Shown here: positions 1 to 44,510 of the stretch, one piece after another | How positions within the stretch are numbered: position 1 is the first letter of the stretch | Layout: each line of letters opens with the position of its first letter | NCBI RefSeq assembly: GCF_044704955.1 | Contig: NC_091989.1 | Location: 104,222,001 to 104,286,000 of the forward strand | Direction: 5' to 3' | Length of the DNA stretch: 64,000 nucleotides | DNA from: Pristiophorus japonicus | Taxonomy: Eukaryota | Program-made: the position numbers and the translations under genes | Notes under the pieces: generated by a model | Seen by the model: the letters and a program-made list of their open reading frames with translations, nothing else | What the model was told of the DNA's origin: nothing | Database searches by the model: none

Positions 1-1
1 C

Positions 2-6188: not shown

Positions 6189-6500
6189 CTGCCCCAATCC
6201 CACTGAAGATTGTTTCCGGGAGAACTGAAGGAATTTCATCTGCGTCTCTGACTCTTGTGTGTAAAAAGACTGCGTGCTATCCGAAGAATTTCACCCTCGC
6301 TTGGTATAAAAATGGCATCGAAACTGCATTAGCAATAGATACCAATAAAGTGCAGAACACGGAGGGACTGTATGAAGTTTCCTGCTCTTTGGCTGAGATG
6401 CAGCCTATCCCGAGCGACGCCAATTATACCTGTTTAGTATCTCATGTCTCCCTCCAGACTCCAGCTGTGGTCACATATACTGTTTCTAAATCTAACCAGG
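6189..6500 (+). CDS. Copy A: intact Ig C1-set exon of a VJ-C1 (SIRP-like) receptor
   Basis: Acceptor ttccgcag|, donor G|gtatgt, phase 1-1, 312 nt, open. APIPLKIV...LTLVCKKTACYPKNFTLAWYKNG...GLYEVSCSL...YTCLVSHVSLQTP has both Cys, the Trp and the C1 YxCxVxH motif. Paralogous to 17601 and 41415. Confidence 0.9.
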
Positions 6501-6725
6501 GTATGTGCACTACAGTCCAAAAAGGTGAAACAGCTACTGTTATATTCGTAAAGCGATATATCTTACAGTTTGTACATGCTGACAATCATATAGTCCACAG
6601 AAGTCCCATTGGAGATATCAATGAAAGCATTAAATTCACGTTTTAATATATAACTGATTCACACATATATTCACAGTCAAACCTAATTTGCTTTCCAATT
6701 CCTCTACTTGATGTATGACAAATAT

Positions 6726-6860
6726 AAGAACATAAGAACATGAGAACATAAGACATAGGAACAACAGTAGCCCATACGGCCCATCGAACCTGCTCCACCG
6801 TTCAATTTCATCATGGCTGATCTTCTACCGCAACTCCATATTCCCGTCCTAGTCTCATTC
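6726..6860 (-). mobile_element. CR1/SINE 3' tail fragment
   Basis: (aagaacat)n followed by the reverse complement of the CR1 3' UTR. Confidence 0.8.
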
Positions 6861-6937
6861 TGTTCAATGTATCAGTTGTGTGTAAACTGGTGAAGGCAAT
6901 GTAACAGGCACATAACAAAGTATTTTAGCCCATGTAG

Positions 6938-7285
6938 GAAGCAAAGGCTGAAAGCGCTAATATGCAGCAGTAGATCTGAGCAGAACTATATAAACTCCAA
7001 GACTTAAACTTAAACTGGAGAGGGCCGAGGGCTGAGAAGCGGATCAGACAGACGCAGTAGCACCAACATTCATGCGACAACGGAGAATACAACGTTGGCT
7101 GACTCTAGTCGTGTATTGTAGCTCAGGCAGTTTGTATGTTGTTCTGATGGCTACTTTGAGCAGCTGCCAGGAAACTGGTAAAACGACCAATTAACAATCT
7201 TTCTAAACACAGCTTTAGTGAGCAAACAAGGGACCATCGCGACTCTAGAAATGTCAGGGTCCAAAATTCAAATGAAAACAGCGTC
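6938..7285 (+). pseudogene. Copy A: decayed remnants of the two ITIM-bearing cytoplasmic exons
   Basis: Aligns by eye to 19302-19700. Acceptor cccatgtag is kept; YAAVDLSR motif has a frameshift and stop; the donor is lost; the VTY segment of the last exon is deleted. AATAAA at 7371-7376. Confidence 0.75.
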
Positions 7286-9937
7286 ATTATTCCTGTATTA
7301 TATCATATAATGTAGCTGTAATTTTATGTTATCACTTCAATATTTGAGGAATTTTCATTTCATTACTTGTAATAAAATGATCATTGCTTCTACATTTTTG
7401 ATCAATCTGTAGTACTTAATAGATGACAAATATCTGCAATAATACGCTATTTCCTTTTCTGCATCGAGCTACGATCATGCATAAATTCAATAAAAATAAT
7501 ACTAATAGATTTCTCTCCCTCAGCAATCAACCATTCGTGATTTTCTTTGCGCGTAAAACTACAAAACCCGCGATTTGATGTATCCTGACTTCCAGTGCAG
7601 GCGATTCTCCTGATTTCGACGATCCAGTCTATGAAGTATTCCATAAACTCTCTGAACACAGCTTGCAGATGATGGTGCATGAAAGGCCTTTCTCTAAATT
7701 CTGTATGACTACCCATTCCTATTTGAAACGATGCATCCTGACAACTTCAAGTTGCTATCAAAGGAATGGCCTCGATTATTCTCATTAGATTTTGTCTTCG
7801 AAAGGATTTCTAGAGTATTTCTAGTGAGACGAGCAACAATAATGAATCCGAGATATAGTACTGAAGTTGTGAGAGGTTCCCTACAGAACTGAATGCATTT
7901 TTATTGGAGAAATGTCAGAATTAACGGAGAAGCGGTATTGAAACAGTTCAAAGACGTGGATAATATAAATATTAGCAGCGTGTAAAGTTTGACATGCAAT
8001 CAGAATTAACAAGCCCCAATAAGAGAGTGTAACTACAACAATTTACGTATTTTAGCGGGGCTGCCTCGTCAGCTGAAATTTAACTAGCCGTTTCCACGAT
8101 TACACTGTGAGTTTTGAGGAAGATCATCACTTGACTTACGGTGTTCAAGTTACTGAAAGAAAGGCAGCCCAACAATTCCAGTGACAAGCTTTAGCTCCGA
8201 ATTTAAGGATAATACAAGACGAAGTGAATCCGTTATATCTTCGGCCGAATTGTTCTGGTTTGATGACTGTGTGCATTAACACGCATTTTATAATCCTGAA
8301 ATGTTAGAGCACAGAATCAGGTCAGGAGGCTCTAAAAGTCGGTACTTTTGTTTCTCCCCATATGCAAAACGTCGTTAGTTCCAATTTACTTTTATATTTC
8401 TATTATCTTCAATATACCTCTTTTTCAAGCAGCTAATTCACTTCTAAAATAATTGCTGGGCAGTGATTCAACAACATTCTGTGGCAGAGAACGTCCATAG
8501 TTCATATTCCAACCAGCCTCTGTGCAAAGAGTATTTTACCTCTTTATGTTTTGCGATTATGTTAAAGTTATGCTCACGCGTCACCGTCTACTTGTTGTTG
8601 GAAAAGTTTATCACCATTTGCTTATCATAAAGCCTCATAGTCTTGAAAACCTATATCAGGTCACTCCTCAATCTTTTCACCTTCAGTGAAAAATGCCCAC
8701 GCTTCTCAAAATAATAACCCTCCATACATGATCATTTAGACGCCAACTTTTAATTTGATTTTGTATTCTTCCATAGTTCTACACAAGCTATTACCTCATG
8801 TGAGCATTACCTTCTTGCTTGTGCATGCTATGTCACCAAATTCTAAAGCAAGAACTCCCTTTACACATTTACTGCATAATACATTTATGTTGTCTTCATG
8901 CATTGAGGTCCCTCTATTCCTGTGCACAATTTAAAAGCACAATCAAGATACATTCCTTGTTCCGACTTTTACCTCCACAACTTTGTCATTTCTCATTTAT
9001 CTGCATTCGTCATCAAACATGTATTTGCCCTTCGAGCGAACTATCAATGTCGCCTGCAGCAATTCAGGATCTGCTTCATAATTGTCTTCCCGACTCCCCT
9101 TTAGTTTTCATCTCCAAATTTTTATGTTGTTCCCTCAATTTCTCAACGAGATCATTGATGTATAAAGTAAAAATGTCAGTCTAACTCGGGGTGTCGTGCC
9201 AATCCTAGAAACGTCGTTTTATTCTTAAACTTTTTTGATATTGCCCAACCATCTCCCTGCCCTTTTGCCACGGAGCCCTCACTTCTGTGTGCCTTCTTCA
9301 CATGTGGTACTGCATCAAATGTTGTTTTTAAATCCACATGAACTGCATTTGCTGAATTTCATTTAACTATTTATTTCTTCAGTGAATTCTGTAATTGAAG
9401 CACGATCTGCCTTTTACAAAATTCGTGCTGACTCGGCTTCATTAGCTCAGCATTCTGCAAGAGATTAGCAGATTTATCCCGATTAATACAGGGTCTGCGA
9501 GCTGTAAGTAAATGTATAACTGTTTACCTATGATTATGCTACATTCTATATCACATGATATTTTCTCATCTAATAATAACTCATTGGCTAGGAGATGGAG
9601 ATTAAATCAGCGTGGAGTAGATTACTTAAATGAAAGTAACGTACAGCACACAAAAAAGATGACCATTTGAACGTTCTATCAGTCCTCTGTTCTAGTTGAA
9701 TGAAATATATCAACGGAGATGTTCACCAATCTTCTTTTTTTTAGCTGCACGAGATGTGTTGCTAAATATTGACACGAGCGTATCGTTTTCTCGAGCTAAG
9801 TAAACACCGTGGCTCAGTAGCTCGAAGCACCGACTGTTCAAAGTTTAAATTTAGCTCTGTTAATTGCAACATCATGAACACGCGTTGAGTGTTGAATAAT
9901 AATAAATAGAATTGCAACAACATATGATACTCAGATA

Positions 9938-15916: not shown

Positions 15917-15944
15917 ACCACAGGATGTGAAATCTCATTGTGGT
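15917..15944 (+). promoter_or_regulatory. Candidate RUNX/ETS elements upstream of copy B
   Basis: ACCACA (15917-22) overlapping CAGGATGT (15921-28), plus TGTGGT (15939-44), about 85-110 bp before the ATG. Motif match only. Confidence 0.35.
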
Positions 15945-16027
15945 GCATTTCAGATTAAACAATCTGCAACCCCTTCTTACAAACGCACGGTCAATGCAGT
16001 CAGTGATCAGTTGAATCTTTGCTCGGG

Positions 16028-16088
16028 ATGTTGTGGACTGTGATCGTTTTGTTCCTGTTCCTGTCTCTCCCGGGGATCATTTACACAG
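16028..16088 (+). CDS. Copy B exon 1: leader / signal peptide
   Basis: MLWTVIVLFLFLSLPGIIYT plus a phase-1 donor (ACAG|gtgcct) matching the phase-1 V acceptor 182 nt downstream. Confidence 0.85.
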
Positions 16089-16270
16089 GTGCCTTTTTAT
16101 TCTCTACCTAACCATCTCAATAAAAATATCCGAAGTAGTTGAATTAAATTTAGTTGGTCCGTCTGTAATCTACTTTCACTTTTGCATTTCTATATATAAA
16201 TGTGCTCCGAAGTGCCTCGTTCCGCATGGAATACAATTGACTAAACTTTAATTATATTATCTAACGGCAG

Positions 16271-16588
16271 CTGCGAGTACTTCGATCAGCGTGTTTCAAA
16301 CTCCCGAACAAGTAATTCAATTAAGAGGAACAAACATCACCTTCCACTGTGTAATCCCCCTTTCTCATGACAATTCTGGGGTAGAAGTGCTTTGGTGGAA
16401 ACAGGGTGAGAATGAATATCTACAAACAGGAGCCGATAAAAGAAAACGAGTTGGTGTCAAAAATAAAGGAGGCGGTTTCTTTGAGTTGCTGAACCTGACG
16501 ATCCAGGACACTGGATTCTATCATTGCGCAGTGATCCGACTGGGAAGAATTATTGGAAATGGAACAGGATCACACCTAACTGTAGGCG
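16271..16588 (+). CDS. Copy B exon 2: Ig V-set domain with germline-joined J-like segment
   Basis: Phase 1-1, 318 nt, open. SVFQTPE...ITFHC...LWWKQ...ELLNLTIQDTGFYHCAV...IGNGTGSHLTVG; donor G|gtaagt. Confidence 0.93.
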
Positions 16589-17600
16589 GTAAGTGACCGG
16601 AGTGAGCGGGAAGGTCCACATGTATCAAATGTAACAAGGATGATGTTTTGTCATTGTTTCATTGTATCGTCTTTGATATAATAAAACAATTATATTAAGG
16701 TCTCTGATAAATGAAACTCTGCACACAATTGCTAATTATACGGCACAATATCACGTTTCATTTGCTGAGTTGTGTAAAATGCCATCAATTTTAACCAGAG
16801 TAATTAACACGCTACTAAAGCAATGTACTGAGTATGTTGGAAATCTGAAATTTAAATAAAAAATGTTGGAAATACTCAACAGTTCAAGCAGCATCTGTGG
16901 AGAAGGGAATAAAGTTAACGTTTCAAGTCTATGACCTGTCGCAAGTAGCATGTTACTGGATTCATCTCAAAATTTATTTTTTACATCAGAATTCTGATGA
17001 TGGAAGTTGCGGGACAAATTCCAAATATATTGATTACTGGCTGAAAATCTTTCTTATTAATGCCCCGCTCCCGTCTATTTACACGATTCTTGCTCCATTT
17101 CAGATACTCTGTTTGTCCCCGTCGCTGTAAGTGAGGTTTGACATTCTTCTGAAATTAATGCTAATGTACTGATAGAATGATTCCCGTGACGGACTTCAAA
17201 TCAGATTAACTGTAAATCAATGGATTCACTCAACAAACTAGACCTCGAACCATAATTTTGTCGCGTCTTTCGCCTCCAATAAATGAACCATTCCCAGAGT
17301 CTGTTGTTGCCGCCTTTTGACACTGAAGGGAATGTAATTTCGCAAAGCGGTTATCATGCTCCGGCTGTGTGAGCTGTCCGAAATTCACTTCGGCCCTGCT
17401 TTATTATCGGTAATCGACATATAATATTTATTTCTCTCCTGGGGAGACAGACAGACCTACAGTTAAGAACAAACAGGGAACGACCAGGAATAACATTCTT
17501 CTCCCATAACTTATATGTCATACATTCTCCCCACCATCCCCCCCCCCCCACCCCACCGCCCAACCCAGTAATCTGATTTCCCACATTTTCTGTTCCACAG

Positions 17601-17926
17601 TTGCCCCAACTCCATTGAAGATTGTCTCCAAGACATCCAAGAGCAATTCATCTGCGTCTCTGTCTCTTCTGTGTGAAACGGCGGAGTTTTACCCGGGCGA
17701 TTTAACCTTCGTTTGGTATAAAAATGACACAAAAGCCGCAACTGGGGTTATTTCCAATAAACGGCAGAACACTGAGGGACTGTATGAAATGTCCAGCTCT
17801 TTGGAAGAGACGCAGCCTGAGCCGAACGGGGCAGTTTACATCTGTTATTGACTCATAACACTCTCGGGACACCCGTCATTGCCATCCACACTGTTAGCAA
17901 TTGCGATACAGATACGCGGCCAACAG
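17601..17926 (+). pseudogene. Copy B exon 3: Ig C1-set domain with a 1-bp deletion near 17845
   Basis: Acceptor ttccacag|. LLCETAEFYPGDLTFVWYKND...GLYEMSSSL...VYIC then TGA 17849-51. Adding one T restores CLLTHNTLGTPVIAIHTV and a phase-1 donor CAG|gtgagg at 17926. Confidence 0.88.
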
Positions 17927-18334
17927 GTGAGGTCAGCTACTGTTAAATTCTGAAAAGGTTTTCCTTGATTTGCTGGTATTAATAATCATAAAGATAGTTA
18001 GGAAAACAGCGCCTGGGATATATAAAAGAATAGTCAAAATTGATGTTTCAATATAAAATATTATTGACCGGCACTTGTGTAAAACCAGAAATAATATTAT
18101 CGCCCTTCACCCAGAAACTGCGTGTAAAACTTCGACAGCTTCCAAATTATAAAAACAATATGAGCAGGTGGTGTAGCTCTTCCATCCAATTATTTTACAT
18201 GGCTTGCTTATTATTAAACATTCAAATGTGTCCTCTTGTTAAATTGATTTTATTCTTTCTCATTATCTGGTTTCCTTACATGAGCTGCAGGACTAGATAC
18301 GGCAGTTCTTTTTTCCGCCTTGCGTGTCTCCCAG

Positions 18335-18674: not shown

Positions 18675-18718
18675 GTAAACAAGAAAGTGTAACAATACTA
18701 GGCCCTCGTGAAGAGCTG
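18675..18718 (+). CDS. Copy B: short cytoplasmic exon 1
   Basis: catttccag| ... |gtaggt, 44 nt, phase 1 to 0, (G)KQESVTILGPREEL. Phase fits the next exon and the equivalent exon of copy C. Confidence 0.65.
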
Positions 18719-19301
18719 GTAGGTTCATATCATTTACCTAGGAATAGGGTTCCAATATAAATAAATATTGTTATGATGGGGATTTTTTTCAAAACAAATC
18801 ACACAAGTATTTGTCCCTCTTTGATGTGTCATTGAAATCGTGTTTTCACACTTGTTGTGAAGTAGGTGTAAGTGATTAAAGAAAGAGAAACAACGAAATC
18901 GGTAGCTTCACTTAATATATAACTAGGTAATAATTATATGTGCATCTATCTAACCTTTGCTTTTGGAATTTGCTATTATATGTCTAAGATGCTGAAACTA
19001 CCTCTTGTTTAAACATATCTCTAACACTACTGTAGTGAAAATCGACAGCTTGAAATGTAAATTAAAATGAACACACTATTTACCGGCCTTAACATTCACA
19101 GAAATGTAAATATATTAGAAAGATAGAAAATAGGTGCAGGGGTAGGCCGTTCGGCCCTTCGAGCTTGCACTGCCAAAGCTGCGGTTTCTGCATTTTATTT
19201 GCAGCCCAGGTCATTCTGGTTACTGTTTGATCAGCAGTCTGTAAATTGGTGAAGGCAATGATGAAGCCACATAAAAAAATATTTTGTTTCTGCCCATGCA
19301 G

Positions 19302-19403
19302 GGAGCCAAGGACGACATCGTGGCTTATCCTGCAGTAAATTTGAGCAAAGCCAAGAAAACTCCAAGACGTAAACATGAAGAGGAGAGGACAACGTGCGCT
19401 CAG
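19302..19403 (+). CDS. Copy B: cytoplasmic exon 2 with ITIM
   Basis: cccatgcag| ... CAG|gtgggg, 102 nt, phase 0-0: GAKDDIVAYPAVNLSKAKKTPRRKHEEERTTCAQ; VxYxxV ITIM. Confidence 0.8.
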
Positions 19404-19499
19404 GTGGGGCTGAGAAGTAGATAAGAGAAACATAGGTCACCAGTGAAGCGCCAACATTAATGTAAGAGCGGAGCTTTTGGGGTTGTTCTGACTTTGACC

Positions 19500-19527
19500 G
19501 TGCGTGTGTGTGTGTGTGTGTGTGTGT
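19500..19527. repeat. (GT)n microsatellite in the last intron of copy B
   Basis: Direct read. Confidence 0.95.
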
Positions 19528-19599
19528 TATTCTGACGGCTGCCTTGAGCAAACTGATAAAACGACCAATCAGCAAGATTTCCAAACATTGGCTTTTCAG

Positions 19600-19713
19600 A
19601 TAAAACAAGGGACAGTCCGGGACAAGGTGACCTACTCGACTCTGGAATTGTCTGGCCCCGAAAAAGCGGGAAAATCTAAAAATAATAAAAGCACAGAATA
19701 TACCGAGATATAG
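19600..19713 (+). CDS. Copy B: last coding exon with ITIM and ITSM
   Basis: gcttttcag| IKQGTVRDKVTYSTLELSGPEKAGKSKNNKSTEYTEI*; VTYSTL (ITIM), TEYTEI (ITSM). AATAAA at 19842-47 and about 20054. Confidence 0.85.
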   Translation: MKQGTVRDKVTYSTLELSGPEKAGKSKNNKSTEYTEI

Positions 19714-21744
19714 ACGACAACCCCAAAAGAAGTCACTGATACAAAAATGAAGTAGCATAACAATCTTGAGCAAATGAATCACTTTGTTGGTGTATATTGA
19801 TTTATTCCGAAGCCATATCAACTCCACTGATTTCAATGGAAAATAAAATCTGGCGGTTCCTATAAAGGGCTGAAGATTCGTTGGGTTAGTTTAACGTTCA
19901 AGCAGTGAAAGTGTTAATTATCTCCATGTGCAGGTATATCCGTGTTATCCAATTACCAAGATGTAACACATTTTAGTGTCATAGTATATAATACAGCTAT
20001 GACAATTCTTTAATTATTTGGGGATTATTAGTTAGAAATATGTAGATGTTTGTAATAAAACAATTTTCAATTTAAATCTGCGTTATTTATTATATGACGA
20101 TCCTATACTATTTCAATTAGAATAATAGGCTAACTCACATGCTGTAATTATTTACCATCAGATATATATATATATATGGCTGTCTTACATCTCCCGGTTA
20201 AAATTCAGCGATAACACATAAGATACATATGTATGGGAAGGGAACGAAACGGCAAAAACTTGAGTGCTGACTTCACGAGTTGTGGCACTGTAAACAGCTT
20301 CTATTCCAGGCGATGCTAAAGGGGTGGAGGACATGAACTCGTCCATAAACTGTCTGAACTTAATTGGCGTTACAGGAGGCACACTTGCTGAACTCTGTGA
20401 TGTCTACCAATTTCTTTCCTTGTAGAAAAGATGGATTAAACCATGATCTAGGTTTTTTTTTAATCGCCAACCTTCCCAATTGAGATATAAGCAGGCTGTT
20501 TGATTTAAACCCTTAACATGCAAAAAAAGTTCGATTCTAACAAGCCTAAATGAAGAAGGGCATTGAACTTCAAATACACACTCATTTTAGAGTGGTTCCC
20601 GTGTCAGGAAAGAGACAACCCGTGGTTTAAAATGTTAAATTGAGATCTATTTGGGAAGTAGATCAATCAAATTACAGGGTTAGAAGATTGCGCAACTGAT
20701 ACCAGAAGAACACTAGTCCAGCAGTTCCAGTGACCAAGTGGATTGCGAATTTGATCCCCAATCGAAAGACCATCCAAGATGAAATTAATTAGTTGACTCT
20801 TGCTTCGTGCAACTGTGATGTTTGGTTGACTGTGTGCATTATCAAGCAGGAGGATCGGCACAGTACCAAGTGTTTTAGAATCCTGGAATGTTAGAGATTA
20901 GAAACCGGCCATTCACGAACAGAGACTGAAACATTGTCTTTCTCCACATGACCCATGTAGTTTAATTCTATATTCCTCTTCGCTCTTCACAATCTTAAAT
21001 GTTCCACTTATTCATGCAATTCCTTCCCAATGAAAAAGATGATCTGCTTCAACAACGGAATGTGGCAGACTACTCCAAATTCACACACTCTAACCATGGT
21101 CTCTGTAAAGAGTATGTTGCATCCCCATTTTGAGATTATGTAAAATGTACGGCTTCTTGTTACCGTCCACCGGCGAATGGTAATAATTCAATAATCCTTC
21201 ACAAACTTAAATGCGCGTCATTAATCTTCTCAACTGCGTTGATGAAAGCCCTAGCTTCTCGCGTCTCTCCATAACATTAACCACACTTTCCTGGTAATAC
21301 AGTAGCTAACCTATGCTGCACGCTTTCCATGTTTTTCTATCCTTCTTGTGATGGGATGATCATATCAAATCACACCAATTACAATTTAAATAAACTCAAA
21401 TACAACATTACCTCTATGGTTTTCCATTTTATTCTCCTAGACAGAAACTCAAAGGACTGTGTTCGGCCATTTATGATTTGTATGTCTGCACACCAAGTTG
21501 AAGGAGTGTTTAATTTCTCCGCTTTTAACTCAAAAAATGTATTACTGTAAATTTATCTGACTTTTACATCTATTATCCAGCGATGCCTATCAGTGTTCCA
21601 CTGCAGAATTTCACAAGCTCCATCGAAATCTACATCCTGCTTTTCCCATTAGGCGTTATCTTCAAATTTCGGTGTTAATCCCTCAATTCCCGCCGACCGA
21701 TAATTTATGTGTGCAGTAAATAAAAACAGCCCAAATCAGGTAGC

Positions 21745-22830
21745 TGTGAAAAAGCATTCGATAAGGTGCCACACAAGAGGATAGTACACAAAGTTAGAGT
21801 TCATGGGATTGGGGGTAATATAGTAGCATGGACTAAGGAATGGTTAACGGACAGAAAACAGTGAATTGGAATAATTAGATCATTTTCGGGTTGGCTGGGT
21901 GCAACTTTATTAGGGCTTGGGCCTGAAATATTTAAAATCTATATCAACGACTGAGGGTTATGCATCTAAGTTTTCTGACGACACACAGTTAGCTGGGAAA
22001 GTATACTGTGAGGAGGAGGCTAAGAGGCTGCAAATGTATATTGACAGATTATTTGAATGGTCACGCACATGGCAAATGATCTATAATGTGGGACATGTGA
22101 AGTTATCCATTTTTGTAGGAAAAATCGAAAAGCAGAATATTGTTTAATATTGAGAGACTAGGAACCGTTGCTATTCAGAAAAACCTGGATGAACTTGTAC
22201 ACGAATCACAGAAATTTAACATGCAGGCAAGCAACTAGGAAGACAAGTGGTATGTTAGCCTTGATTACAAAGGGTTTGGTGTATGAGTAAATAAACTTAC
22301 TACAATTAAATAGGGCCTTGGTGAGACCATACCTGGGGTACTGCGTACAGTTGTGATATCTGTACCCAAGGTAGGTTATGCCTGCCTTGGAGGGAGTGCA
22401 ATGAAGTATCACTAGATTGATTCCTGGGATGAGGGGACTTTGATATGGGGACAGATTTAGTAGTATAGGCCAATATTACCTAGAATTTCGAAGAATCACA
22501 GGTGATCTCATTGAAACATACAACATTATTAAAGGGATTGACAGGTTGGATGCTCAGAAAATATTCCCCCTGGCTGGGGAATCTAACTAGGGGTCACAGT
22601 CTTATTTAGGGCTAACATGAGGAAACGTTTCTTCCTCAAAGGATTCCCTTCACCAGAATGCTGTGAAAGCTCAGTCGTTGAGTACATTCACGACAGAGAT
22701 CGTTATATTTCTGGATACTAAAGGAGCAAAGAGATATAGGGATAATGCGGGAAAGTGGAATTCCGGTAGAAGGACTTATTGGATAGCAGAACAGGCTCGA
22801 AGGGCCGAAGGGCGTACTCCTGATCTGGAA
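21745..22830 (+). mobile_element. Older degenerate CR1 fragment
   Basis: [15 protein letters not shown] and LVRPYLGYC remnants with a 3' UTR. Confidence 0.88.
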
Positions 22831-27140: not shown

Positions 27141-27673
27141 GATCGGTTGTTGCTTTGTAAATGCACGCTATCAAACATTTCAATTAAGTAAAATCAATCT
27201 TACATTTAATTGTTATTTATTGTTTCAGTTGTTCAGCAAAACCTACATTTCCCCTACAACAGCATTTAATTGCCTCTTAAATGATTTCAGAGCCCCCCCC
27301 CCCCCCACCCCGCATGAGTACCCCAAGTCCTCTTCCATTGTCGATCAGTCTCTGTGTGAAAAAAAGCTTTTCAAGTTCTGTTCTCGGAATGGGTGTCACA
27401 TCTGCAAGGCTGAATTTGTCATGTATCCTACATGGTCACTGCTCGTACTATTACAGGGTGTGCCACTAGAGGGCACTGCAGTGGTAGACTTGCAGGTTTG
27501 CTGTACAGGTATGGCTGGACTAGTATAAAAGGCAGGCCACCATGTGTGATCCTCACTCTGGAGTTATCAATGAAGGATTAAGGTCACTACAGTTCAAGTA
27601 CAACACATTGCCTCGTGGATTCATTATAGGAGCATTTAAAGACATAACAATTGGCGATGAGATTCACGTGAAA

Positions 27674-28900
27674 ATGGCTACCCTTGGTACATTGCAGCAG
27701 TTCGCCGACGGTGATGATTGGGATACCTTTGTGGAGTGGCTCAACCATTTCTTCACAACAAATGACCTAGCAGGCATCAATCCAGCCAAAGTGGCTGATA
27801 AGCGCAGAGCTGTCCTGCTAGCCAGTTGTGGGACCACTGTCTATGGCCTCGTCAGGGACTTGCTGGTACCAGCGAAGACAATGACCAAGACATATGAGGA
27901 GCTTGTAATGCTGATCCAAGAGCAACTCAAGCCGAAAGAGAGCATCCTCACAGTCAGACACCGGTTTTCCACCCATCGATTGCCCAAAGGCCTGGAAATC
28001 ACGAAATATGCTGCAGAACTCAAAAGGCTGGTGGCACCATGTGATTTGGGCAACCACCTCACCGAAGCACTGCAGGACATCTTTGTCATTGGAATCGGCC
28101 ATGATGGCCTGCTTCATAAGCTGTCTGCGGATACCGCAGTGACATCGCAGAAGGCCATTTCCGTGAGCCAGGCATTCATGACCTCGACCTGCGGCTTTAG
28201 GCAGATGAATCATCCTCAAGACTCAAACCCGATAAGTATTGTGCTAGAGTGGTGCCTTTTAGATGTTGGATTATAGAACGTGAACCTTCTCAGGGAAGAG
28301 AGAACAGGCTCCCGAGCCCCTTAACACAGAGTCCGCCGAGGGGGGCTAATCAAGTAGCTCCAGGCTGGCGTTGCAGAAGGAATCACAAGGCTCACCAGTG
28401 CCATTATGTGTGTAAAGGCTGCAGCACAAAGGGCCACCTCCAGCAAATGTGTAAATTAAATATGACTCAATGTATTGATGAAGAGTCTGCAGATGGCCAT
28501 GAATCCAGTGTGGATTATGAAACAATAGGCAGAGAGGCAGCTCAGCCCCACGATGAGGTATATAGCATGGTTTCCTGCATCACCAAGTGTTCCCCATTGA
28601 GGAAGGAAGTCAAGATCAATGGCGTTCCAGTCTTCATGGAAGTGGACGGGGGGCGCGCCAGTCAGTAATGAATCAAGAAGCCTTTGAGAGGCTATGGGAC
28701 AATGAAGCTGAATGATCCAAGTTGGTCCTGGTTCAGGCAAAACTGCGCATCTACACTGATGAACATATCCCAATCATTGGTAGTGCAGATGTAAAGGTAC
28801 TCCATGATGGCATGGTGCAAAAGTTACTTCTGTGGATTGTTGCAGGTGATGGATCAACGCTACTCGGAAGAAGGTGGATGGAGAAGATCCATTGCAGTTG
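27674..28900 (+). pseudogene. gag-pro: Gypsy gag-protease, frameshifted
   Basis: MATLGTLQQFADGDDWDTFVE gag start, zinc knuckle CKGCSTKGHLQQMC, protease region VFMEVD... and TLLGRRWM; no RT, RNase H or integrase found downstream. Confidence 0.85.
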
Positions 28901-29945
28901 GGAAGCCTTCATCCCTCCAGCGTTCAACGTCCTCCAAGCAAAGAGGCAAAGCAAGCCCTCACCTGACGTTGGATCCAGAACCACAGAGCAGACAAGCACA
29001 GAACCTGAGGCACAGATCACTCAGCATGACTGCGTGGAGATGATCCAGCTGAGACGACCTGAATGCACCTTCCAGGCTCTAGTGGCAGGACTCCGAAAGA
29101 AGAAAATCAGATCCAAAGGCAAGTTCCCAGCTTCAGTAGCAGAAACTGGGGAGAAGAGGATCACCGCAGTCGACATCGTGGAGGGAGGAAAGATGGCACC
29201 AAAACCACGAGGTGATGTGCTGAAGAAAAAGATGGCGCCGGCCAAACCACAAGGTGCAGTGCTGATGGAGCAACACGTGGCACCAAACGGAGAAGAGGAT
29301 TGAGGTAAAGGAGGCCTGCAAACTACCACAGTTAAAGGGACAGTTCCACATTTTCAATCAATGTAGGAGCAACTGTGAGTTAGATATAAAATGTGCAATT
29401 GATGAACAGAATTGGTCATGCAATAAGCAAAGAAAAGTCTCAATGTAATAGCAACTGTGTTAGATGTAAGATGTGTAATTGATGATCAGAGCTATGCCCA
29501 TGCAATAAGCAAAGAAAAGGCGCGCAATCGCGATCGGAGTTACATGTTATTTACAATGAGTAATGAAACATTGTGCCATGTAGGATTCCAACAGCATACA
29601 GTCAATTCAGCGGGCAGACACCCATTGGGAGCACACAGGTCCAGCGAGCTATCCAATATAGTAGACTGCATCTCTGGGACCAGAGTTATGCACCATGGAG
29701 TGTGGTCACAAGCAGCCAATACATACAAGCTGCAGAGCAAGCGATTTCAGGAGCGCAATGGCAATGGTATCGATACCCTGCCCCTGATCAGCTCCATCTC
29801 TCAGACACCCAATGGCATCAACCACCATGAGCCTGAAAGAGCAAACTGAGCTAAGGCGCAGCCCCCAGACCCTATCACCACCAAGGCCATACCCGGCAAT
29901 GAATGGTCTCCCGCAACGGGTCTCCCAAATGGGACCAGGAGCAGC

Positions 29946-32660
29946 CAGGATAGATAGATTCAGGAAGGATAGAATAAAAGGAAAAGGAGGTGGGGTAGCA
30001 TTGCTGGTTAAAGAGGAGATTAATGCAATAGTTAGGAAGGACATTAGCTTGGATGATGTGGAATCTATATGGGTAGAGCTGCAGAACACCAAAGGGCAAA
30101 AAACGTTGGTGGGAGTTGTGTACAGACCTCCAAACAGTAGTAGTGATGTTGGAGAGGGCATCAAATAGGAAATTAGGGGTGCATGCAATAAAGGTGCAGC
30201 AGTTATCATGGGTGACTTTAATATGCATATAGATTGGGCTAACCAAACTGGAATAAATACGGTGGAAAAGGATTTCCTGGAGTGCATAAGGGATGGTTTT
30301 CTAGACCAGTTTGTCGAGGAATGAACAAGGGGGGAGGCCATCTTAGACTGGGTGTTGTGTAATGAGAGAGGATTAATTAGCAATCTCGTTGTGCGAGTTC
30401 ACTTGGGGAAGAGTGACCATAATATGGTGGAATTCTATATGAAACAGTTAATTCAGAGACCATGGTCCAGAACATAAAGAATGGTAACTTTGAAGGTATG
30501 AGGCGTGAATTGGCTAGGATAGATTGGTGAATGCTGTCATAAGGGATTGACAGTGGATGGGCAATGGCAGACATTTAGAGACCGCATGGATGAACTACAA
30601 CAATTGTACATCCCTGTCTGGCATAAAAATAAAAAAGGGAAGGTGGCTCAACCGTGGCTATCAAGGGAAATCAGGAATAGTATTAAGGCCAAGGAAGTGG
30701 CATACAAATTGGCCGGAAATAGCAGCGAACCCGGGGACTGGGAGAAAATAGAACTCAGCAAAGGAGGACAAAGGGTTTGATTAGGGCAGGGAAAAGAGAG
30801 TACGAAAGGAAGCTTGCAGGGAACATTAAGATGGACTGCGAAAGCTTCTATAGATATGTAAAAAGAAAAAGGTTAGTAAAGACAAACGTAGGTCCCCTGC
30901 AGTCATAACGGGGAACAAAAAAATGTCAGACCAATTGAACAAGTACTTTGGTTAGGTATTCACTAAGGAGGACACAAACAACCTTCCGGATATAAAAGAG
31001 GTCAGAGGGTCTAGTAAGAAGGAGGAACTGAGGGAAATCCTTATTAGTCGGGAAATTGTGTTGGGGAAATTGATGGGATTGAAGGCCGATAAATCCCCAG
31101 GGCCTGATGGACTGCATCCCAGATTACTTAAGGAGATGGTCTTGGAAATAGCGGATGCATTGACAGTCATTTTCCAACATTCCATAGACTCAGTATCAGT
31201 TCATATGGAGTAGAGGATAGCCAATGTAACCCCACTTTTTAAAAAAGGAGGGAGAGAGAAAACAGGGAATTATAGACCGGTCAGCCTGACATGGGTAGTG
31301 GGTAAAATGATGGAATCAATTATTAAGGATGTCATAGCAGCACATTTGGAAAGAGGTGACATGATAGGTCCAAGTCAGCATGCTTGAAAGGGAAATCATG
31401 CTTGACAAATCTTCTCAAAATATTCCAGGATGTTTCCAGTAGAGTGGACAAGGGAGAACTAGTTGATGTGGTGTATTTGGACTTTCAGAAGGCTTTCAAC
31501 AAGGTCCCACATAAGAGATTAATGTACAAAGTTAAAGCTAATGAGATTCGGGGTAGTGTGCTGACGTGGATTGAGAACTGGTTGTCAGACAGGAAGCAAA
31601 GAGTAGAGATAAATGGGTACTTTTCAGAATGGCAGGCAGTGACTAGTGGGGTACCGCAAGGTTCTGTGCTGGGGCCCCAGCTGTTTACATTATACATTAA
31701 TGATTTAGATGAGGGGATTAAATGTAATATCTCCAAATTTGCAGATGACACTAAGTTGGGTGGCAGTGTGAGCTGTGAGGAGGATGCTTTGAGGCTGCAG
31801 AGTGACTTGGATACATTAGGTGAGTGGGCAAATGCATGGCAGATGAAGTATAATGTGGATAAATGTGAGGTTATCCACTTTGGTGGTAAAACCAGAGAGA
31901 CAGACCATTATCTGAATGGTGACAGGTTAAGAAAAGGGGAGGTGCAATGAGACCTGGGTGTTATCGAAGTAATTGAAGGTTGGCATTCAGGCACAGCAGG
32001 CGGTTAAGAAAGCAAATGGCATGTTTGCCCTCATAGCGAGGGGATTTGAGACAGGGGCAGGGAGGTGTTACTACAGTTTTACAGGGCTTTGGTGAGGCCA
32101 CACCTGGAGTATTGTGTACAGTTTTGGTCTCCTAACTTGAGGAAGGACATTCTTGCTGTTGAGGGAGTGCAGCGAAGGTTCACCAGACTGATTCCCGGGA
32201 TAGCAAGACTGACATATCAAGAAAGACTGGATCAACTGGGCTTGTAGTCACTGGAGTTCAGAAGAATGAGAGGGGATCTCATAGAAATGTTTAAAATTCT
32301 GACAGGTTTAGACAGGTTAGATGCAGGAAGAATGTTCCCAATGTTGGGGAAGTCCAGAACCAGGGGTCACAGTCTAAGGATAAGGGGTAAGCCATTTAGG
32401 ACCGAGATGAGGAGAAGCTTCTTCACCCAGAGAGTGGTGAAACTGTGGAATTCTCTACCACAGAAAGTTGTTGAGGCCAATTCACTAAATATATTCAAAA
32501 AGGAGTTAGATGTAGTCCTTACTACTAGGGGGATCAAGGGGTATGGCGAGAAAGCAGGAATGGGATACTGAAGTTGCATGTTCAACCATGAACTCATTGA
32601 ATGGCGGTGCAGGCTCGAAGGGCTGAATGGACTACTCCTGCACCTATTTTCTATGTTTCT
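29946..32660 (+). mobile_element. CR1 LINE (endonuclease part, RT, tail) inserted inside the Gypsy element
   Basis: RKDRIKGKGGGVALLV, VYRPP, GDFN endonuclease motifs; RT motifs; TTTCTATG tail at about 32648-32663. Confidence 0.96.
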
Positions 32661-34165: not shown

Positions 34166-34204
34166 AGGTCATGTCTTGCAACGGGAATGTAATGATGCTA
34201 TCTT

Positions 34205-36860: not shown

Positions 36861-38132
36861 GGCCTTTACATAGCAAGAAACAATGCAAGACTAGGGCTTC
36901 CGTTAATTGTACAGATAAGAATGTTATGAAACAACTGATTACTCCGTGTACACATTATGACAACTGTACGCTAACTTTTTATACAATAATTTCTCGAAAG
37001 GAAATTGATTGCAAGGCTTTTCGTAGGTGACAGATGTTACTATAATTAACAGTGTTCATATGCTCTTGGCTCAATTTCGTGGCAAACTGTTATTTTGCCC
37101 TCAACAGCTCTGGACTGTCTGTAGACTCCAAGGTCGTCAAGAATTGAAGATGCCCCATAGCGAGAGAGATTCTGATATCACCGACATTCTTGAACAAAAC
37201 AACAGAGAACCCTTTTCATCCAACAGTTGTTCTCCTTCTCATCTCCACCCTCTATTCCGCTCCCACATATGTTTCCCTATGCTACCATATTACTGTCAGC
37301 GCTGATTCAAATGTTTATCGCTTTCCCTCCTAAACTGCAATTATGTCTTCCAGCAGGCTCTTTCTCATTTCTGCTCCCTCAAACAGTTGAATTCAAGACA
37401 TATTCCTTGAAGACCTCCAAACTTTCCTCAATCTTTGCTTCCTCGACTATCGACAGGATTTCAAAACCTCTGTTGCTATTATTAATCACTGCCTCCTGAT
37501 TTACCTTTTGCTCTATCTTACGTTTTACAATCTCAAAGGGGACCATGTCCATACAACTTGGTTTCTGAATTTGGAAAAGTTTAAATAAGGAAGTATGTGG
37601 CATTGTGTTTGGAATATTACAGCTCTTTCTTTCACCATTGCGGACGCCCGTCAAACAGATTAAATTGCATTGGTCAGCTCAGTTCACTTAATCAATTATG
37701 TTCTCAAGTTCAACTTACTTTGAAACTTAAATCTATTTTTCAACAGGTACGTGGGTCTGAGGTTGCCTTGAAATAACATTGGGTGCTGCGATGGGGCTCT
37801 AATCTACATGAAGCATACACCTCCATTTCATTCTTTAAATTTGGCCCTTGGCACCACCGTCACAGGCTTGTTGTCTCACACGTCATTGTCTCACAATTCA
37901 TAGCAGGTTATGCACAGCGTTATTTCCCCTAATCTATTAGAGTTTTGTGTTTGTTGCCTTCAAACAGCCAGTTCCATCACTGAAATGTCTATGACACCTG
38001 TACTTCGGAGTATACAGTTCATTAGGATTATTTTCACATGTATTTCCTTTAGTTCGTTCTTTGCCTTTATGTCTCTCTTTCTCTCGGAAACTCATTCCGT
38101 TTGTTTTAAAACTATAAAATTCTTAATATTTG

Positions 38133-38421
38133 CTGCGGTTACTCTGTTTCAAGTAACCCAAGCCCTGAAAATACCATTTCGATCGCTGGTACAAACATTG
38201 TCTTCAATTGCACATTTACTACCTTGCAGCACGATTCTGATATGAATATTTATTGGTGGAAACTTGGCAAAAAAGAATTGATACAACCAGACATCAGAAA
38301 ACGACTGCTTACTTCGAACTCGAGAATATCAGCGTCCGGAACTCTGAAGTTTATCACTGCGGAATGACACGTCAGAGAAACAGGTTCGTAAATGAAAGCG
38401 GATCAAACCTTGTCGTCAAAG
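38133..38421 (+). pseudogene. Copy C: VJ exon, pseudogene
   Basis: Across frameshifts: FQVTQ/SPENTISIAGTNIVFNC...IYWWKLG...DIRKR/AYFELENISVRNSEVYHCG...VNESGSNLVVK, donor G|gtaaga. Internal deletion, acceptor lost. Clearly paralogous to 16271-16588. Confidence 0.88.
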
Positions 38422-38819
38422 GTAAGAACATTGTAAAGAGCATATCGGCATTACAGGGTCACAGTTATTCAAAATAAATAATGAAGTATCGCATTTCCCA
38501 CTCTCTCTCGTGCTGTTTTAACATTTACATTACAAATCAAATGGTTCAATGGTTCAATTTTAGATTCTAGTTATAAAACACAATACTTGTAGATCTGTGT
38601 GCTGGTTTTTAAACCATCCTAATCGTTTTATTAATCATTAGTTCTGTAATGTCATGCATGTAAGCGTACGCAGGAAGAATTGTCATGCCATTTAGGTGCA
38701 AATACAAATTGTGATAACTTGAAAGGTTTTCAGTATAAATTACATTTTGATTGGGCTGATTTGAATATATCCCGAACAGTTTAAAACAGCAGTTTCATGA
38801 CCATCTAAACTATCAGGCT

Positions 38820-39805: not shown

Positions 39806-39909
39806 ATGCAGTATGAAGTCTAATTTCAATGACAACATGTATACAAAATTTAATCCACGGGATCATTTTAGAATGCTGTGCCCCTGCTCTTGCTGCGATA
39901 AATAAGAAG

Positions 39910-40325
39910 GAACTTGTACTTATAGAAGTTGTCCCAAAGCGTTTTATATCCAATTAAGTGTTTTTGTAATCTAGTCACTGTTTTAATGTAATGAAGCGTG
40001 GCAGCGAATATACAAACAGCAATGTCCGACAAGGGATAACCGCTAGATCTTTCATGATGGTGCCTGAGGGATAAATATTGGCCAGGACATCGGGACCATT
40101 TCTATGCATTTCTTCGAGTAGTGCGGTGGAAGAGTTTATGCTCATCTGAGAGGGCAGAGGGACTGAGGTTTAACATCGCATCCGAATAACACTTAGACAG
40201 TGCAATAATCCCTCCTGCACTGAAGGGTCTTGATGATTTGTGCTGAAGTCTCTGGAATAGGGCTTAGAACTCAGAAAGTTCTTTCTCGGAGGCAGGAGTG
40301 CTACTACGAAGCAATGACTGACACT
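39910..40325 (-). mobile_element. DeuSINE-type SINE remnant (SacSINE1/AmnSINE1-like central domain)
   Basis: Reverse complement contains TCGGATGCGATGTTAAACC...CTGCCCTCTCAG...GTCCTGGCCAATATTTATCCCTCA, matching my recollection of the Deu domain. A more decayed copy lies at about 52660-53030. Confidence 0.7.
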
Positions 40326-41414
40326 ATATTCTCTAGGGCTGAGAGATCAGAGGGTCGGAAGCCTGGCTCTATTTCCTGTTCTTCAGTCTGTAGTTTCTCT
40401 CAGCCTCTGGTCGACGAACCAAATAATTTGCATCTCCTCAAATCCCTTCAAAAACGAATATATTATCGATAAAGAATGTTGTGAATGTGTCCCTGAATTG
40501 TGCAAACTCCATTCGCCGCAGTTGTTACTTTCTCTCACACGCCGAAGTGAAAGTTTCGCCTTTAGGTAATATCACTGATTGTGATGTTATGCGTTTACTG
40601 GGACCATGCAAATAATACGAATAAAAAAAACCTCATGGCTGGAAATAGAATTCCTTTCGTGGTCGCCGCTAATTGTGAGAAAAGTGTCCATCTAAGATGC
40701 TATGCCACCACAGTTTATTCCTCGGGTTACTTTAGTAACAAGACGGGCGATGGTATGGGGTTGCGCTTCCTCTCTCAACCGTAGGTAGTGACAATATGTA
40801 AGCGCAATTTGAATGTTTCATCCGGTCCGGAATAGTGGGCATAGAAGGTCTTCATAAACGCATCTTCTATTCGCTACACAGACCAGAGGAATTCTTCACT
40901 CACGCTTTCAAATTGTTCTCAATAACGAGGTAACGCTGGAAAATGGGGTTTCGATGTTGTACAGAGGGAGCTGCATAAATCGTGAACATAATGGGCAAAA
41001 GAACCAGAAGCAACACGAGGGGAAAATACACAGCAACGGGGTGACCGAAATAGATTCAATAGCAATCTTCAAACGGAAATTGGTTAACTACTTGAAGGGA
41101 AACATTTGCGGGGCTCTGGGGAAAAGAGCAGGGATGTGGAACTAATTTGATTGCTCTTCCAAATAACCGACATAGACACGATGGGCTGAGTGGCGTCTTT
41201 CTGTGCTGTACAATCTATGATTCTATAATCTACAGTAATTACAACTGAATGTTTTCACTTCTCCATAAACAAACAGATGTATAGCTTTCTCACACTGTTG
41301 TATCCGATCTGAAGATGTATCTTTCCATTGGAAATGTTCCGTCACAACAAGAAATTAAGTCAAAAATTCCAGAATAGATCAGTAATGTAACTTTCTTCTT
41401 CGACCTGTCACCAG

Positions 41415-41725
41415 CTCCCCCAACTCCCCTGAGGATTGTTTCCAAAGCATCGGAAATTAATGTATTCGGTTCTTTGACTCTCGTGTGAGTAATGGCTTGA
41501 TTTTACCCGGATGAACTGGCTATCACTTGGTACAAAAATAATGGCAGTATTGAGACCAAAATACATACTACTAAGCAGCTCAGCAGAGCTGGGATGTATG
41601 AAGCTCCAGCTATTTTGCAGAGGCACAGCCTGTCCAAGGAGGAACTGTTTATGTTTATCTGGTTTCTCACGTGACCCTCCAGTTTCCAGCCATGGCAATT
41701 TACTTGGTCCCAAATTCTAACTCAG
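41415..41725 (+). pseudogene. Copy C: C1 exon, pseudogene
   Basis: PPTPLRIVSK...LTLV*VMA*FYPDELAITWYKNN...GMYE/...VYVYLVSHVTLQFPA. Both Cys lost (TGA, TAT), two stops, a frameshift, donor GT>GG. Confidence 0.9.
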
Positions 41726-42692
41726 GGAGGATGTCACTTTGCTTACAAAAACAAACGTCTGCCAGTAATCTGTGAGGCAATTATTCCCAGACATGTGAAG
41801 AGTTCCTCTTTAATTATTGAAAGGGAAACGTGTAAGAAATTTAGCGACAAATTGCGAACAGTGAAAATTATCCAACACACGATATTTTTGTAAAATCCCA
41901 TCAATATTAAAAATATTATTGTTCAATGTTTATTTCCAGAGCACATAGATTTCCAGTTTCTGATCTACCACCTCCTCCGGAATGGTTACAGTTTAATTCT
42001 ATATTTCTGGAAGGCTGACAGCCCATTAGTTTCTGTATCTGTTTTTCATTCTGTGGGATAAGAGCATTTTCTATTGATAAGATTAAAACTGAATTTTTAG
42101 TTTAACTAGTTAATTAATACAATTAACAATTGCCCTCGTCACTATGTGGGGTTGCGTCGTAACTTCTTTTTGGACCGTTTCCTCTGTTAGGTATTTCTGG
42201 AAATGTTGCTTTTTTCCTCAGTATTATGTTTGTAACATTTCTCGCGCCGCCCATTTGTTTCATCAATGCTCCATTCATTCCAAATGATGTAACAGCCACT
42301 ATTTGAAGAAAATAAGAAATATGCAGTGAGTTCTCGGTACCTAACATAACTGGTTTGTATGTTACCCATTTTACTAGCAATAGCGATCACAGCAAATGTC
42401 CACATATATATTTGCATTGGAGCAATCAGCGCAATCCTTCTTAATTTAACATTTCAGATTAAAGAATTTCCACATTCAAGCCACATACGTGTTCGAGGAC
42501 AAAGTAAGCTACTTAGCGTTTCGACCATGTCGCACTAAATCAGCGGTTATTTGATTTGAAAGGAGGTGATAATGAGGGCATATTGAACGAAAAATGAATA
42601 TTGATGAATAAACTTGGCCCGATGTGAAAAAAATAATTTTGTACAGAACTGTTTTCTGGGTTGCAATATTTACTGAACTTACGGGGTGCACT

Positions 42693-42813
42693 GGGCAAAC
42701 TTTCAGCTTCGGCAGGCGTATAAAATATAATGGAAAGGAAAATCTGCCGGTGTGTATAACGCAACTGATCCTATACCGCCAGTTTTGCACCCCACCGAAG
42801 TTGAAAGTTCCAC
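42693..42813. mobile_element. Small palindromic MITE
   Basis: AACTTTCAGCTTCGG ... CCGAAGTTGAAAGTT inverted termini. Confidence 0.55.
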
Positions 42814-43133
42814 CATAATAAACTAGGGGATGAAATTGGTCTTCAGCGGTCACTGAAAATGGCGGATAGCGATTCAGCAGCCGGTTTTACACTCCTCGCG
42901 AGTTTCTGTTCCATTGCCCTATTTTCCACCGGGCGATGAGGCTAATGTCTCTCACCCTTTTCGTTTAGTTTTAAATAGCGATAAATCAATTTCCATCAGT
43001 TAGCAATTTGATTACCCATGCTCAACTGATGTAAACATTTGTTCAGGTATCAGCTTCCATTTAGGACTCTGACTGCCGACGGCATCCTCAACAAAGCACA
43101 GCCCTACATATGGAAGTTATATTAATCGCGCAG

Positions 43134-43254
43134 GCAGTGACTGTACCTCGCCCTCGCGTTATTTACGGATCATGGGATGTGCAGGCTTTGCGGTGACGTT
43201 ACTGGTGCTGCTGATTATCATCTGGAATGTCGTTCACATTCAGTAACTGTAAAG
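43134..43254 (+). pseudogene. Copy C: transmembrane exon (frameshifted at its 3' end)
   Basis: cgcgcag| (G)SDCTSPSRYLRIMGCAGFAVTLLVLLIIIW..., donor AAAG|gtaagt; 121 nt, so off by one for phase 1-1. Confidence 0.75.
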
Positions 43255-43639
43255 GTAAGTTACCATCAGATTGTATAATTTAAATACAAATGACAACGAA
43301 CAGAAAGGGCTAGTCAGCATGGAGAGAGGTTTGATCCAAGCTATAATTTACTGGTCAGAAGATTTGTTGGCACTGAACTAGAGCTCTGGTGGGTGTTGAA
43401 TTTTGAAATCGGTCTGTGGTCCGGAAATGCAGTTTTTAAAGTTGAATGGTATGAACATAAAGATGGATTGTATTTCCGCTGCGCTGTCTCCCACCTCACG
43501 CCGACCCGGAAATTGTCTCACTAATATTCCACATGTTAAAATATACTAGAGGATGAATATAACTGAAATTCTGTTCATCTTTTTTTAGGCTGAGGTGTCA
43601 AACTGTTTTTGCTTTTATAGAGAGCAATGTCGCATTCGT

Positions 43640-44315
43640 ATTAGTTCCAAGCTTATGGTCTACAAGGCAGTAGTAATATTCGCCCTCCTACATATCTCAG
43701 AGATGTGAGCCATATACAGTAGACACCTCAAAGCGCTGGAGAAGTACCACCCGCGCTGCCTCCGCAAGATCCTGCAAATCCACTGGGATGAAAAAACGCA
43801 TCAACTTCAGCATTCTCGATCAGGCTAATATCTCCAGCATCAAAGCATTGACCACACTCGACCAGTAGCATTGAGTGGGCCACATCATCCGCATGCCCGA
43901 CAGGAGACTCCCAAAGCAAGTGCTCTACTCGGAACTCCTAGAGGGCAAGTGAGCCCCAGTGGGCAGAGGAAACCTTTCAAGGACACCCTTAAAGCCTCCT
44001 TGATAAAGTGCAACATCCCCACTGGCACCTGGGACTCCCTGGTCCAAGACTGTTCTAAGTGCAGGAAGAGCATCCGGGAGGGCGCTAAGTACCTCAAGTC
44101 TCATTGCTGAGAGCATGAAGAAAACAAACGCAGACAGCGGAAGAAGTGTGCAGAAAACCAGACTACCCACCCACCTTTTCCTTCAACCACTATCTGTCCC
44201 ACCTTTGACAGAGATGTAATTCCCACACTGGACTGTACAGTCACCTGAGAATTCACTTATAGAGTGGAAGCAAGTCTTCCTCGATTTCGAGGGACTGCCT
44301 ATGATGATAATGATT
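43640..44315 (+). mobile_element. RTE-clade LINE 3' fragment
   Basis: GQRKPFKDTLKASLIKCNI, C2H2-like end, (ATG)n tail. Confidence 0.9.
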
Positions 44316-44469
44316 AGTGTTGGTCAACTAATATCCCACAAAATCCAGGTTGCAGAATATTATGATTTTTTTTTCGACTTTGCCTTCACTGTAATTTGTC
44401 ATTGGCCGTACTTGCTGAATCATATCGTGCAACATTCACAATGACGTTTTGTATTGTGTGTTTTGCCAG

Positions 44470-44510
44470 GCAGACACAGAAAAGGTGAAGCAAACAATTG
44501 TGATGAGTAT
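44470..44510 (+). pseudogene. Copy C: short cytoplasmic exon
   Basis: ttttgccag| (G)RHRKGEANNCDEY |gtaagt; 41 nt, phase 1 to 0, same position and phase as 18675-18718. Confidence 0.6.

Follow-up and report, generated by a model that had tools for sequence, protein, structure and literature searches.

The window analysed here is a stretch of 64,000 nucleotides from Pristiophorus japonicus (contig NC_091989.1, positions 104,222,001 to 104,286,000 of the forward strand), and it holds three sets of exons, designated copies A, B and C, of a family of cartilaginous-fish receptors with a V-set domain, a C1-set domain, a transmembrane (TM) segment and a cytoplasmic tail (Table 1). The exons were located with profile hidden Markov models (HMMs) built from an alignment of 21 full-length relatives and searched against all six frames of the window, and the homology queries were the exons taken singly. 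The family V profile matches at 16252–16593 (E 3e-43) and at 38110–38474, where the match is split over two frames, and the family C1 profile matches at 6164–6643 (E 6e-39), 17510–17848 (E 5e-32) and 41378–41772, the last in three pieces; these represent two V exons and three C1 exons, all on the plus strand, and no further V or C1 match was found with these profiles on either strand of the whole window. Pfam V-set and C1-set matches in the window exceed the gathering score as well. The copies are interspersed with reverse-transcriptase open reading frames (ORFs) of long interspersed nuclear elements (LINEs) and with retroelements, and the window is rich in repeats. Three same-strand paralogous exon sets among LINEs had been proposed in an original prediction made from the sequence, and the profile HMMs and Pfam bear this out; its starting coordinate, 6189, coincides exactly with the base at which the C1 exon of copy A begins. 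However, the full series of leader, V, C1, TM-cyt, cytoplasmic and last exons that it described is present in 0/3 copies, no copy is a complete open gene from leader to tail, and the supposed cluster of working genes consists of three loci that are all defective in this assembly. The region from 6.2 to 43.3 kb very probably contains the decayed relics of three long-diverged members of a multigene family of type I membrane receptors in chondrichthyans.

Table 1. Exons and exon remnants of the three receptor copies (positions counted from the first base of the window; a slash marks the exon border at a donor site).
Feature	Position	Strand	State and remarks
Copy A C1-set exon	6189..6500	+	intact, phase 1-1, cag acceptor, CAGG/GTATGT donor
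Copy A remnant of two cytoplasmic tail exons	6947..7234 (approximate)	+	dead, several in-frame stops
Copy B leader exon	16028..16088	+	MLWTVIVLFLFLSLPGIIYT, intact, phase 1 donor ACAG/GTGCC
Copy B V exon with germline-joined J	16271..16588	+	GNGTGSHLTVG, intact, phase 1-1
Copy B C1 exon	17601..17926	+	broken by 1-bp deletion, stop TGA 17849-17851
Copy B possible juxtamembrane remnant	18675..18718	+	GKQESVTILGPREEL, phase 1-0, no hydrophobic segment
Copy B cytoplasmic exon	19302..19403	+	GAKDDIVAYPAVNLSKAKKTPRRKHEEERTTCAQ, phase 0-0, one ITIM-like motif
Copy B last exon	19600..19713	+	IKQGTVRDKVTYSTLELSGPEKAGKSKNNKSTEYTEI then stop; ITIM VTYSTL, ITSM TEYTEI
Copy C V exon	38140..38430	+	pseudo-exon, mid-domain frameshifting deletion, degraded J motif VNESGSNLVV
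Copy C C1 exon	41415..41727	+	pseudo-exon, two in-frame stops, frameshift, second Cys changed to Tyr (YVYLVSH)
Copy C connecting-peptide and TM exon	43134..43254	+	SDCTSPSRYLRIMGCAGFAVTLLVLLIII..., Arg in membrane span, stop soon after

The closest relative of copy B is P0014 of Heterodontus francisci (XP_067904999.1), with which the leader of copy B shares 72% and its V domain 77% identity. The V exon scores 34.9 bits against the Pfam V-set model (cutoff 26) and keeps every nearly invariant residue of the family, with the motifs VYWWKxGE, DSGVYYC and NGTGSxLxV; because it ends in GNGTGSHLTVG directly before the donor G/GTAAGT, its J segment is joined in the germline. The C1 exon has lost one base (TGT-TA) just 3' of the codon for the second Cys, as a DNA alignment with copies A and C shows, and its profile match ends at position 81 of 96. 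The ancestral donor of this exon at 17911 has changed from GT to AT, and a good phase-1 donor, CAG/GTGAGG, is present 15 bases downstream, at 17926. A contig of short reads from public data (run X1, record 2), which may come from the same animal as the assembly, spans 17766–18271 with no difference and no gap, and since it has the same sequence, the deletion is not a long-read homopolymer error. In the same run, a second haplotype is visible, with two heterozygous single-nucleotide polymorphisms in the V exon (16284 and 16374), several more in the V-C1 intron (16700 and 17451–17588) and a CCC insertion after 17537, so that the sequenced animal is heterozygous at the copy B pseudogene.

Beyond its C1 exon, copy B shows no TM exon between 17927 and 19301 with the TM profile, tblastn or local alignment. 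The best TM profile score there is E 6, at 17970–17990, and the same profile finds the TM exon of copy C at E 3e-7. A segment at 17958–18030 (VFLDLLVLIIIKIVRK) was considered as a TM region produced by loss of the C1-TM intron and was rejected, as it is unsupported by the TM searches. The stretch at 18675–18718, which the original prediction took for the exon joining the membrane span to the tail, contains no hydrophobic span; it possibly represents a juxtamembrane remnant, judging from its resemblance to the ...IIIGKQCQL... end of family TM exons. P0014 is likewise without a recognisable TM segment, its model running into unrelated sequence after C1, and the membrane anchor of this lineage may have been lost before the two sharks diverged. 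The two tail exons of copy B are found by the family tail profile, the first (19302–19403) at E 1.6e-7 and by tblastn to Callorhinchus P0031 at E 1e-7, and the last (19600–19713) at E 3e-9. The last exon contains VTYSTLEL...STEYTEI, that is, an immunoreceptor tyrosine-based inhibitory motif (ITIM) and an immunoreceptor tyrosine-based switch motif (ITSM). The second tail tyrosine of the family is Cys in copy B, and three of the four are kept. The acceptor of the first tail exon is adjoined by a very high-copy short repeat at 18935–19332; this repeat and a second one at 21721–21900 reach a summed contig depth of 6,000–65,000, compared with about 10–20 in the flanks, and they are the sole parts of the stretch present in the small runs X5 and X6. 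The runs examined were four DNA runs of one sample and three small runs containing repeats only, and they yielded no transcript information. Related LINE-tail sequence recurs at more than 10 sites in the window.

In copy A, the C1 exon is intact and scores 31.5 bits against the Pfam C1-set model (cutoff 21). It is 65–69% identical to the C1 domain of a SIRP-like protein of Mustelus asterias, and in the C1 tree it falls inside the family clade (98/96), adjacent to members from Mustelus and Scyliorhinus (99/92). Downstream of it, 6855–7234 and copy B 19211–19613 share 66% DNA similarity over 416 bases; this tail remnant carries stops at places where copy B reads GAKDDIVAYPAVNL..., and it gives no match to the family tail profile. 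No TM exon of copy A was found in the window with tblastn, local alignment or the TM profile, and neither a V nor a leader exon is present, the 6.2 kb upstream of C1 being filled by a LINE and an endogenous retrovirus. The right-hand part of this retrovirus covers 1–3150, the expected site of the copy A V exon; an integrase-like ORF (2–778) runs off the start of the window and is followed by ORFs at 967–1683, 1873–2586 and 2574–3149, the last of which has a hydrophobic span like that of an env TM subunit.

Copy C retains a V, a C1 and a TM exon, the first two as pseudo-exons. The V profile finds the V exon as two fragments, each in its own frame (E 7e-14 and 2e-10), the TM profile gives E 3e-7, the sole TM match in the window, and tblastn matches both of these exons; the tail profile finds no tail exon. 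In the family alignment, the TM exon is laid out like those of P0024, P0036 and P0071, which are short-tailed members of activating type with an Arg in the TM segment. A motif of the Y.C.V.H kind (FRCAVSH) at 43480 was considered as a further immunoglobulin (Ig) exon and was rejected as a chance match with no Pfam hit.

The nearest relatives of the three copies differ, with copy A 69% identical to a Mustelus sequence, copy B 69% to the Heterodontus one and copy C, read with X at its breaks for this comparison, 53% to another representative, and the mutual identity of the copies is only about 50% (50% between A and B); this makes them old neighbouring lineages and not recent local duplicates. 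Under the preferred reading, copies A and B derive from inhibitory members and copy C from an activating one, and all three are pseudogenes or gene fragments broken up by retroelement insertions. Several points weigh against this reading. The apparent loss of function is read from the sequence alone, and copy A could have a V exon upstream of the window. In addition, the open C1 exon of copy A (103 codons) and the leader, V and tail of copy B keep every conserved residue, which is more than expected for old pseudogenes; recent death, a role as gene-conversion donors or unseen splicing may account for these open exons. It might be argued that copy B is a working inhibitory receptor gene, its deletion being a sequencing error or a null allele peculiar to one individual and its TM exon so diverged that the profile missed it. 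The leader, V and two tail exons are intact with their splice sites, a good phase-1 donor remains at 17926 and the individual is heterozygous around the gene; however, the short-read contig has the same deletion without a gap, the 1.4 kb gap between C1 and tail yields no match to a profile that detects the TM exon of copy C, and the second tail tyrosine is Cys, which makes a working copy B highly improbable. Copy A, for its part, could be a soluble V-C1 decoy whose V exon lies upstream of the window and whose end is supplied by read-through past the donor or by an unseen exon, given that C1 and both its splice sites are perfectly kept while the tail exons are dead and a TM exon was not found. 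Against this, the 6.2 kb upstream are occupied by mobile elements without a V or leader exon, and in a young pseudogene a run of 103 codons can stay open by chance; a decoy is considered very unlikely. The reading of all three copies as pseudogenes or fragments is preferred, and for annotation the exons of the window should be marked as pseudogenes and not counted as receptors.

The family to which these relics belong is large, and its members were encountered solely in sharks, rays and chimaeras. A HMMER search of 1.84 billion representative proteins with the C1 exon of copy A gave 353 matches at E ≤ 0.001 and 101 at E ≤ 1e-10, and 87 C1 domains reached a family-level score among the best 150 representatives. 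The named representatives with at least 39% identity are all chondrichthyan (17/17; sharks, rays, a skate and the elephant shark) and come from Mustelus, Scyliorhinus, Heterodontus, Heptranchias, Callorhinchus, Amblyraja, Hypanus, Hemiscyllium and Mobula, with Hemitrygon and two Chiloscyllium species as members of their clusters. Many family proteins have about 250–400 residues, with the J strand near residue 110, PPTPL near 122, YxCxVxH near 200 and the TM segment near 230, followed by several tyrosine motifs or else a short tail. The C1 exon is recognised by its start (V)PPTPLKI and by LTLVCxTAxFYP and VYTCxVSH; the broken exons of copies B and C also match the C1 profile. RefSeq contains dozens of models from at least 10 chondrichthyan species under inconsistent automatic names, namely 'tyrosine-protein phosphatase non-receptor type substrate 1-like', 'signal-regulatory protein beta-1-like', 'tapasin-related protein-like', 'immunoglobulin lambda-1 light chain-like', 'NCR3 ligand 1-like' and 'uncharacterized'. 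Several members of one species share one chromosome-scale contig, and one Callorhinchus model fuses C1-V-C1 of neighbouring genes, which points to tandem arrays. The original prediction had suggested that the family was possibly uncharacterised, and this holds in the sense that it is unstudied, since no published description of a shark SIRP-like family was found in the literature searched, but it is not unseen, as the family is already predicted by computer in the RefSeq annotations.

In an intact gene of the family, the leader is split, a single exon encodes V together with its J strand (NGTGSxLxV), and one C1-set exon, one TM exon and two or three cytoplasmic exons follow. The presence of a single C1 domain per copy, noted in the original prediction, agrees with the C1 profile in the window and with nearly all family proteins. 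One skate protein departs from this: P0007 (Amblyraja radiata XP_032892405.1) is modelled as V-C1-C1-TM with two almost identical C1 domains and is either a very recent exon duplication recreating the SIRP-like V-C1-C1 layout or a gene-model artefact. Arginine in the membrane span is the usual mark of pairing with a DAP12-type adaptor, and short-tailed members with such a span would be predicted to signal through an adaptor of this kind. Inhibitory members carry a SIRP-alpha-type tail with two pairs of ITIM and ITSM-like motifs, and by analogy with SIRP-alpha (PMC2785349) this tail would be phosphorylated and recruit SHP-1/SHP-2; the same analogy suggests that long-tailed members bind a ligand through the V domain. 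With inhibitory long-tailed members and short-tailed members with an Arg in the TM segment, the family therefore looks like a paired inhibitory/activating system with birth-and-death turnover. The proposed signalling cannot operate in the window, because every copy there is broken.

The relation of the family to SIRPs is most evident in a comparison of the chimaera protein P0074 with the lungfish SIRP-alpha-like protein P0119, which are collinear from C1 through the TM segment to all four tyrosine motifs (E 5e-16); the motif pairs are VYATLDL/ITYATLQL, TVYAQ/TEYAE, VTYAALDL/VTYADVSI and TEYAEI/TEYATV. The top hit of P0074 in the PDB is human SIRP-alpha (2wng), narrowly ahead of UrIg2 and light chains. 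The V sequence of the window is 28% identical to the V domain of pig SIRP-beta (E 2e-4) and has no similarity to the V domain of the UrIg2-like protein P0013. The closest named matches of the C1 query outside chondrichthyans include lungfish, frog and pig SIRPs and also teleost Ig kappa and MHC-I-like proteins, and the best PDB hit of the copy A C1 domain is UrIg2. The C1 tree was built from 96 columns with SIRP, UrIg2-like and MHC-I-like domains and contains no Ig light-chain, T-cell receptor (TCR), tapasin, NKp30 or PRARP domains; the named Ig-kappa match P0109 offered no usable C1 domain. In this tree, the family forms one clade that includes copy A, and the UrIg2-like domains form a separate one (91/81). 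The join to SIRP is weak and partial, and the tree leaves the deep relations unseparated.

Compared with SIRPs, the family shares a V-set domain with a J-like G strand in one exon, followed by a C1-set domain and a single TM segment; its four-tyrosine tail is arranged as two pairs of ITIM and ITSM-like motifs as in SIRP-alpha, and, as with SIRP-beta, short-tailed members with a charged TM segment exist. Unlike SIRPs, nearly all its proteins have one C1 domain and not V-C1-C1, the family is strongly expanded and diverse in chondrichthyans, and the ectodomain identity to SIRPs is only about 27–30%. UrIg and UrIg2 of cartilaginous fish do not rearrange either; like the family, they have a split leader, C1-set domains and a VJ exon joined in the germline (PMC12227049, PMC10751288). 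It has been reported that UrIg2 has 9–11 C domains, and it is described without inhibitory tail motifs (PMC12227049), whereas the window copies have one C1, a V domain without UrIg2-like similarity and a C1 domain in a separate clade. Ig lambda and TCR chains share the order V-J-C1 and a comparable sequence similarity, but the family is without recombination signal sequences (RSSs) or rearrangement and has its own TM segment and ITIM/ITSM tail. To our knowledge, NKp30 (NCR3) has no C1 domain. NKp30 and the chicken PRARP genes (PMC10751288) are like the family in being non-rearranging VJ-type genes.

The resemblance of the V and C1 domains to the V and C domains of light chains could suggest that the exons are part of a rearranging Ig light-chain or TCR locus. 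However, the germline V exon already includes J and is followed immediately by a splice donor, exons for the TM segment and the ITIM tail occur as well, and a scan of the window with 12- and 23-spacer RSS consensus sequences (≤3 mismatches) gave 1 and 0 matches, respectively, against about 0.9 expected, the single 12-spacer match lying in a LINE ORF. The missing RSS and the joined VJ exon refute this explanation, which has practically no probability left; the original prediction of a V exon with a joined J and no RSS is confirmed in copy B, and RSS-bearing segments nearby, which it had named as evidence to the contrary, do not rise above chance within the window. A further explanation is that the family is not kin to SIRPs and represents an independent antigen-receptor-like lineage, related to UrIg or Ig light chains, whose ITIM/ITSM tail arose by convergence or was shuffled in. 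Several results weigh on this side: the ectodomain profile scores about as high against Ig lambda V-C (72 bits, in one stretch) and UrIg2 as against SIRP-alpha, the C1 domain of copy A has UrIg2 as its best PDB hit, there is one C1 and not two, and some members are named Ig-lambda-like in RefSeq. In the C1 tree, the family joins only some tetrapod SIRP domains, weakly (83/80), with other SIRP domains elsewhere. Because this join is weak and the ectodomain profile unspecific, the SIRP assignment rests mostly on the tail, the TM-proximal region and V. These regions argue against a separate lineage, however, as P0074 is collinear with the lungfish protein over C1, TM and four tyrosine motifs and V matches SIRP V and not UrIg2-like V; moreover, the C1 clade is apart from UrIg2-like domains, and one skate model is V-C1-C1. 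A non-SIRP origin is considered unlikely. As judged from these comparisons, the V domain of the window appears weakly SIRP-like and not UrIg2-like, the ectodomain appears generically antigen-receptor-like, and the three copies are best described as probable pseudogene relics of a paired, SIRP-type V-C1 receptor family. The proposal of a large, non-rearranging VJ-C1 family with SIRP-like features and birth-and-death evolution is in turn supported by the data on nearest relatives and family size.

Beside the copies, the window contains repeats only. An LTR-retrotransposon-like block occupies 27524–30400; a gag-like ORF with a CCHC zinc knuckle lies at about 28201–28665 and is followed by ORFs resembling protease and reverse transcriptase, and long antisense ORFs run across the same stretch.

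The window displays only the 'death' side of family turnover, in copies of both types that were damaged by indels and moved apart by retroelements, and adds little to the description of the family itself, and the link to a pre-RAG ancestor of antigen receptors, raised in the original prediction, is no stronger for its copies than for SIRPs in general. A proper description of the family is warranted, since its members are labelled in four contradictory ways across the databases. C1-set domains are known almost exclusively from antigen receptors, MHC molecules and a small number of associated proteins. A kinship of SIRPs with the precursor of antigen receptors has been put forward (PMC2785349), and a large family in sharks, rays and chimaeras that combines one C1 and a germline VJ with a SIRP-alpha-type tail dates this type of receptor back to the base of the jawed vertebrates. 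It is tentatively suggested, as a possibility that is more doubtful than probable, that the chondrichthyan V-C1 family is a true co-orthologue of SIRPs and that a single C1 with a germline VJ is the older state. If so, a paired VJ-C1 system with a SIRP-alpha-type tail would already have existed in the jawed-vertebrate ancestor, the window would record turnover in lineages of both types, inhibitory and activating, that predate the shark orders and are decaying next to each other, and the family would offer a tractable non-rearranging model of the receptor type thought to be ancestral to antigen receptors.

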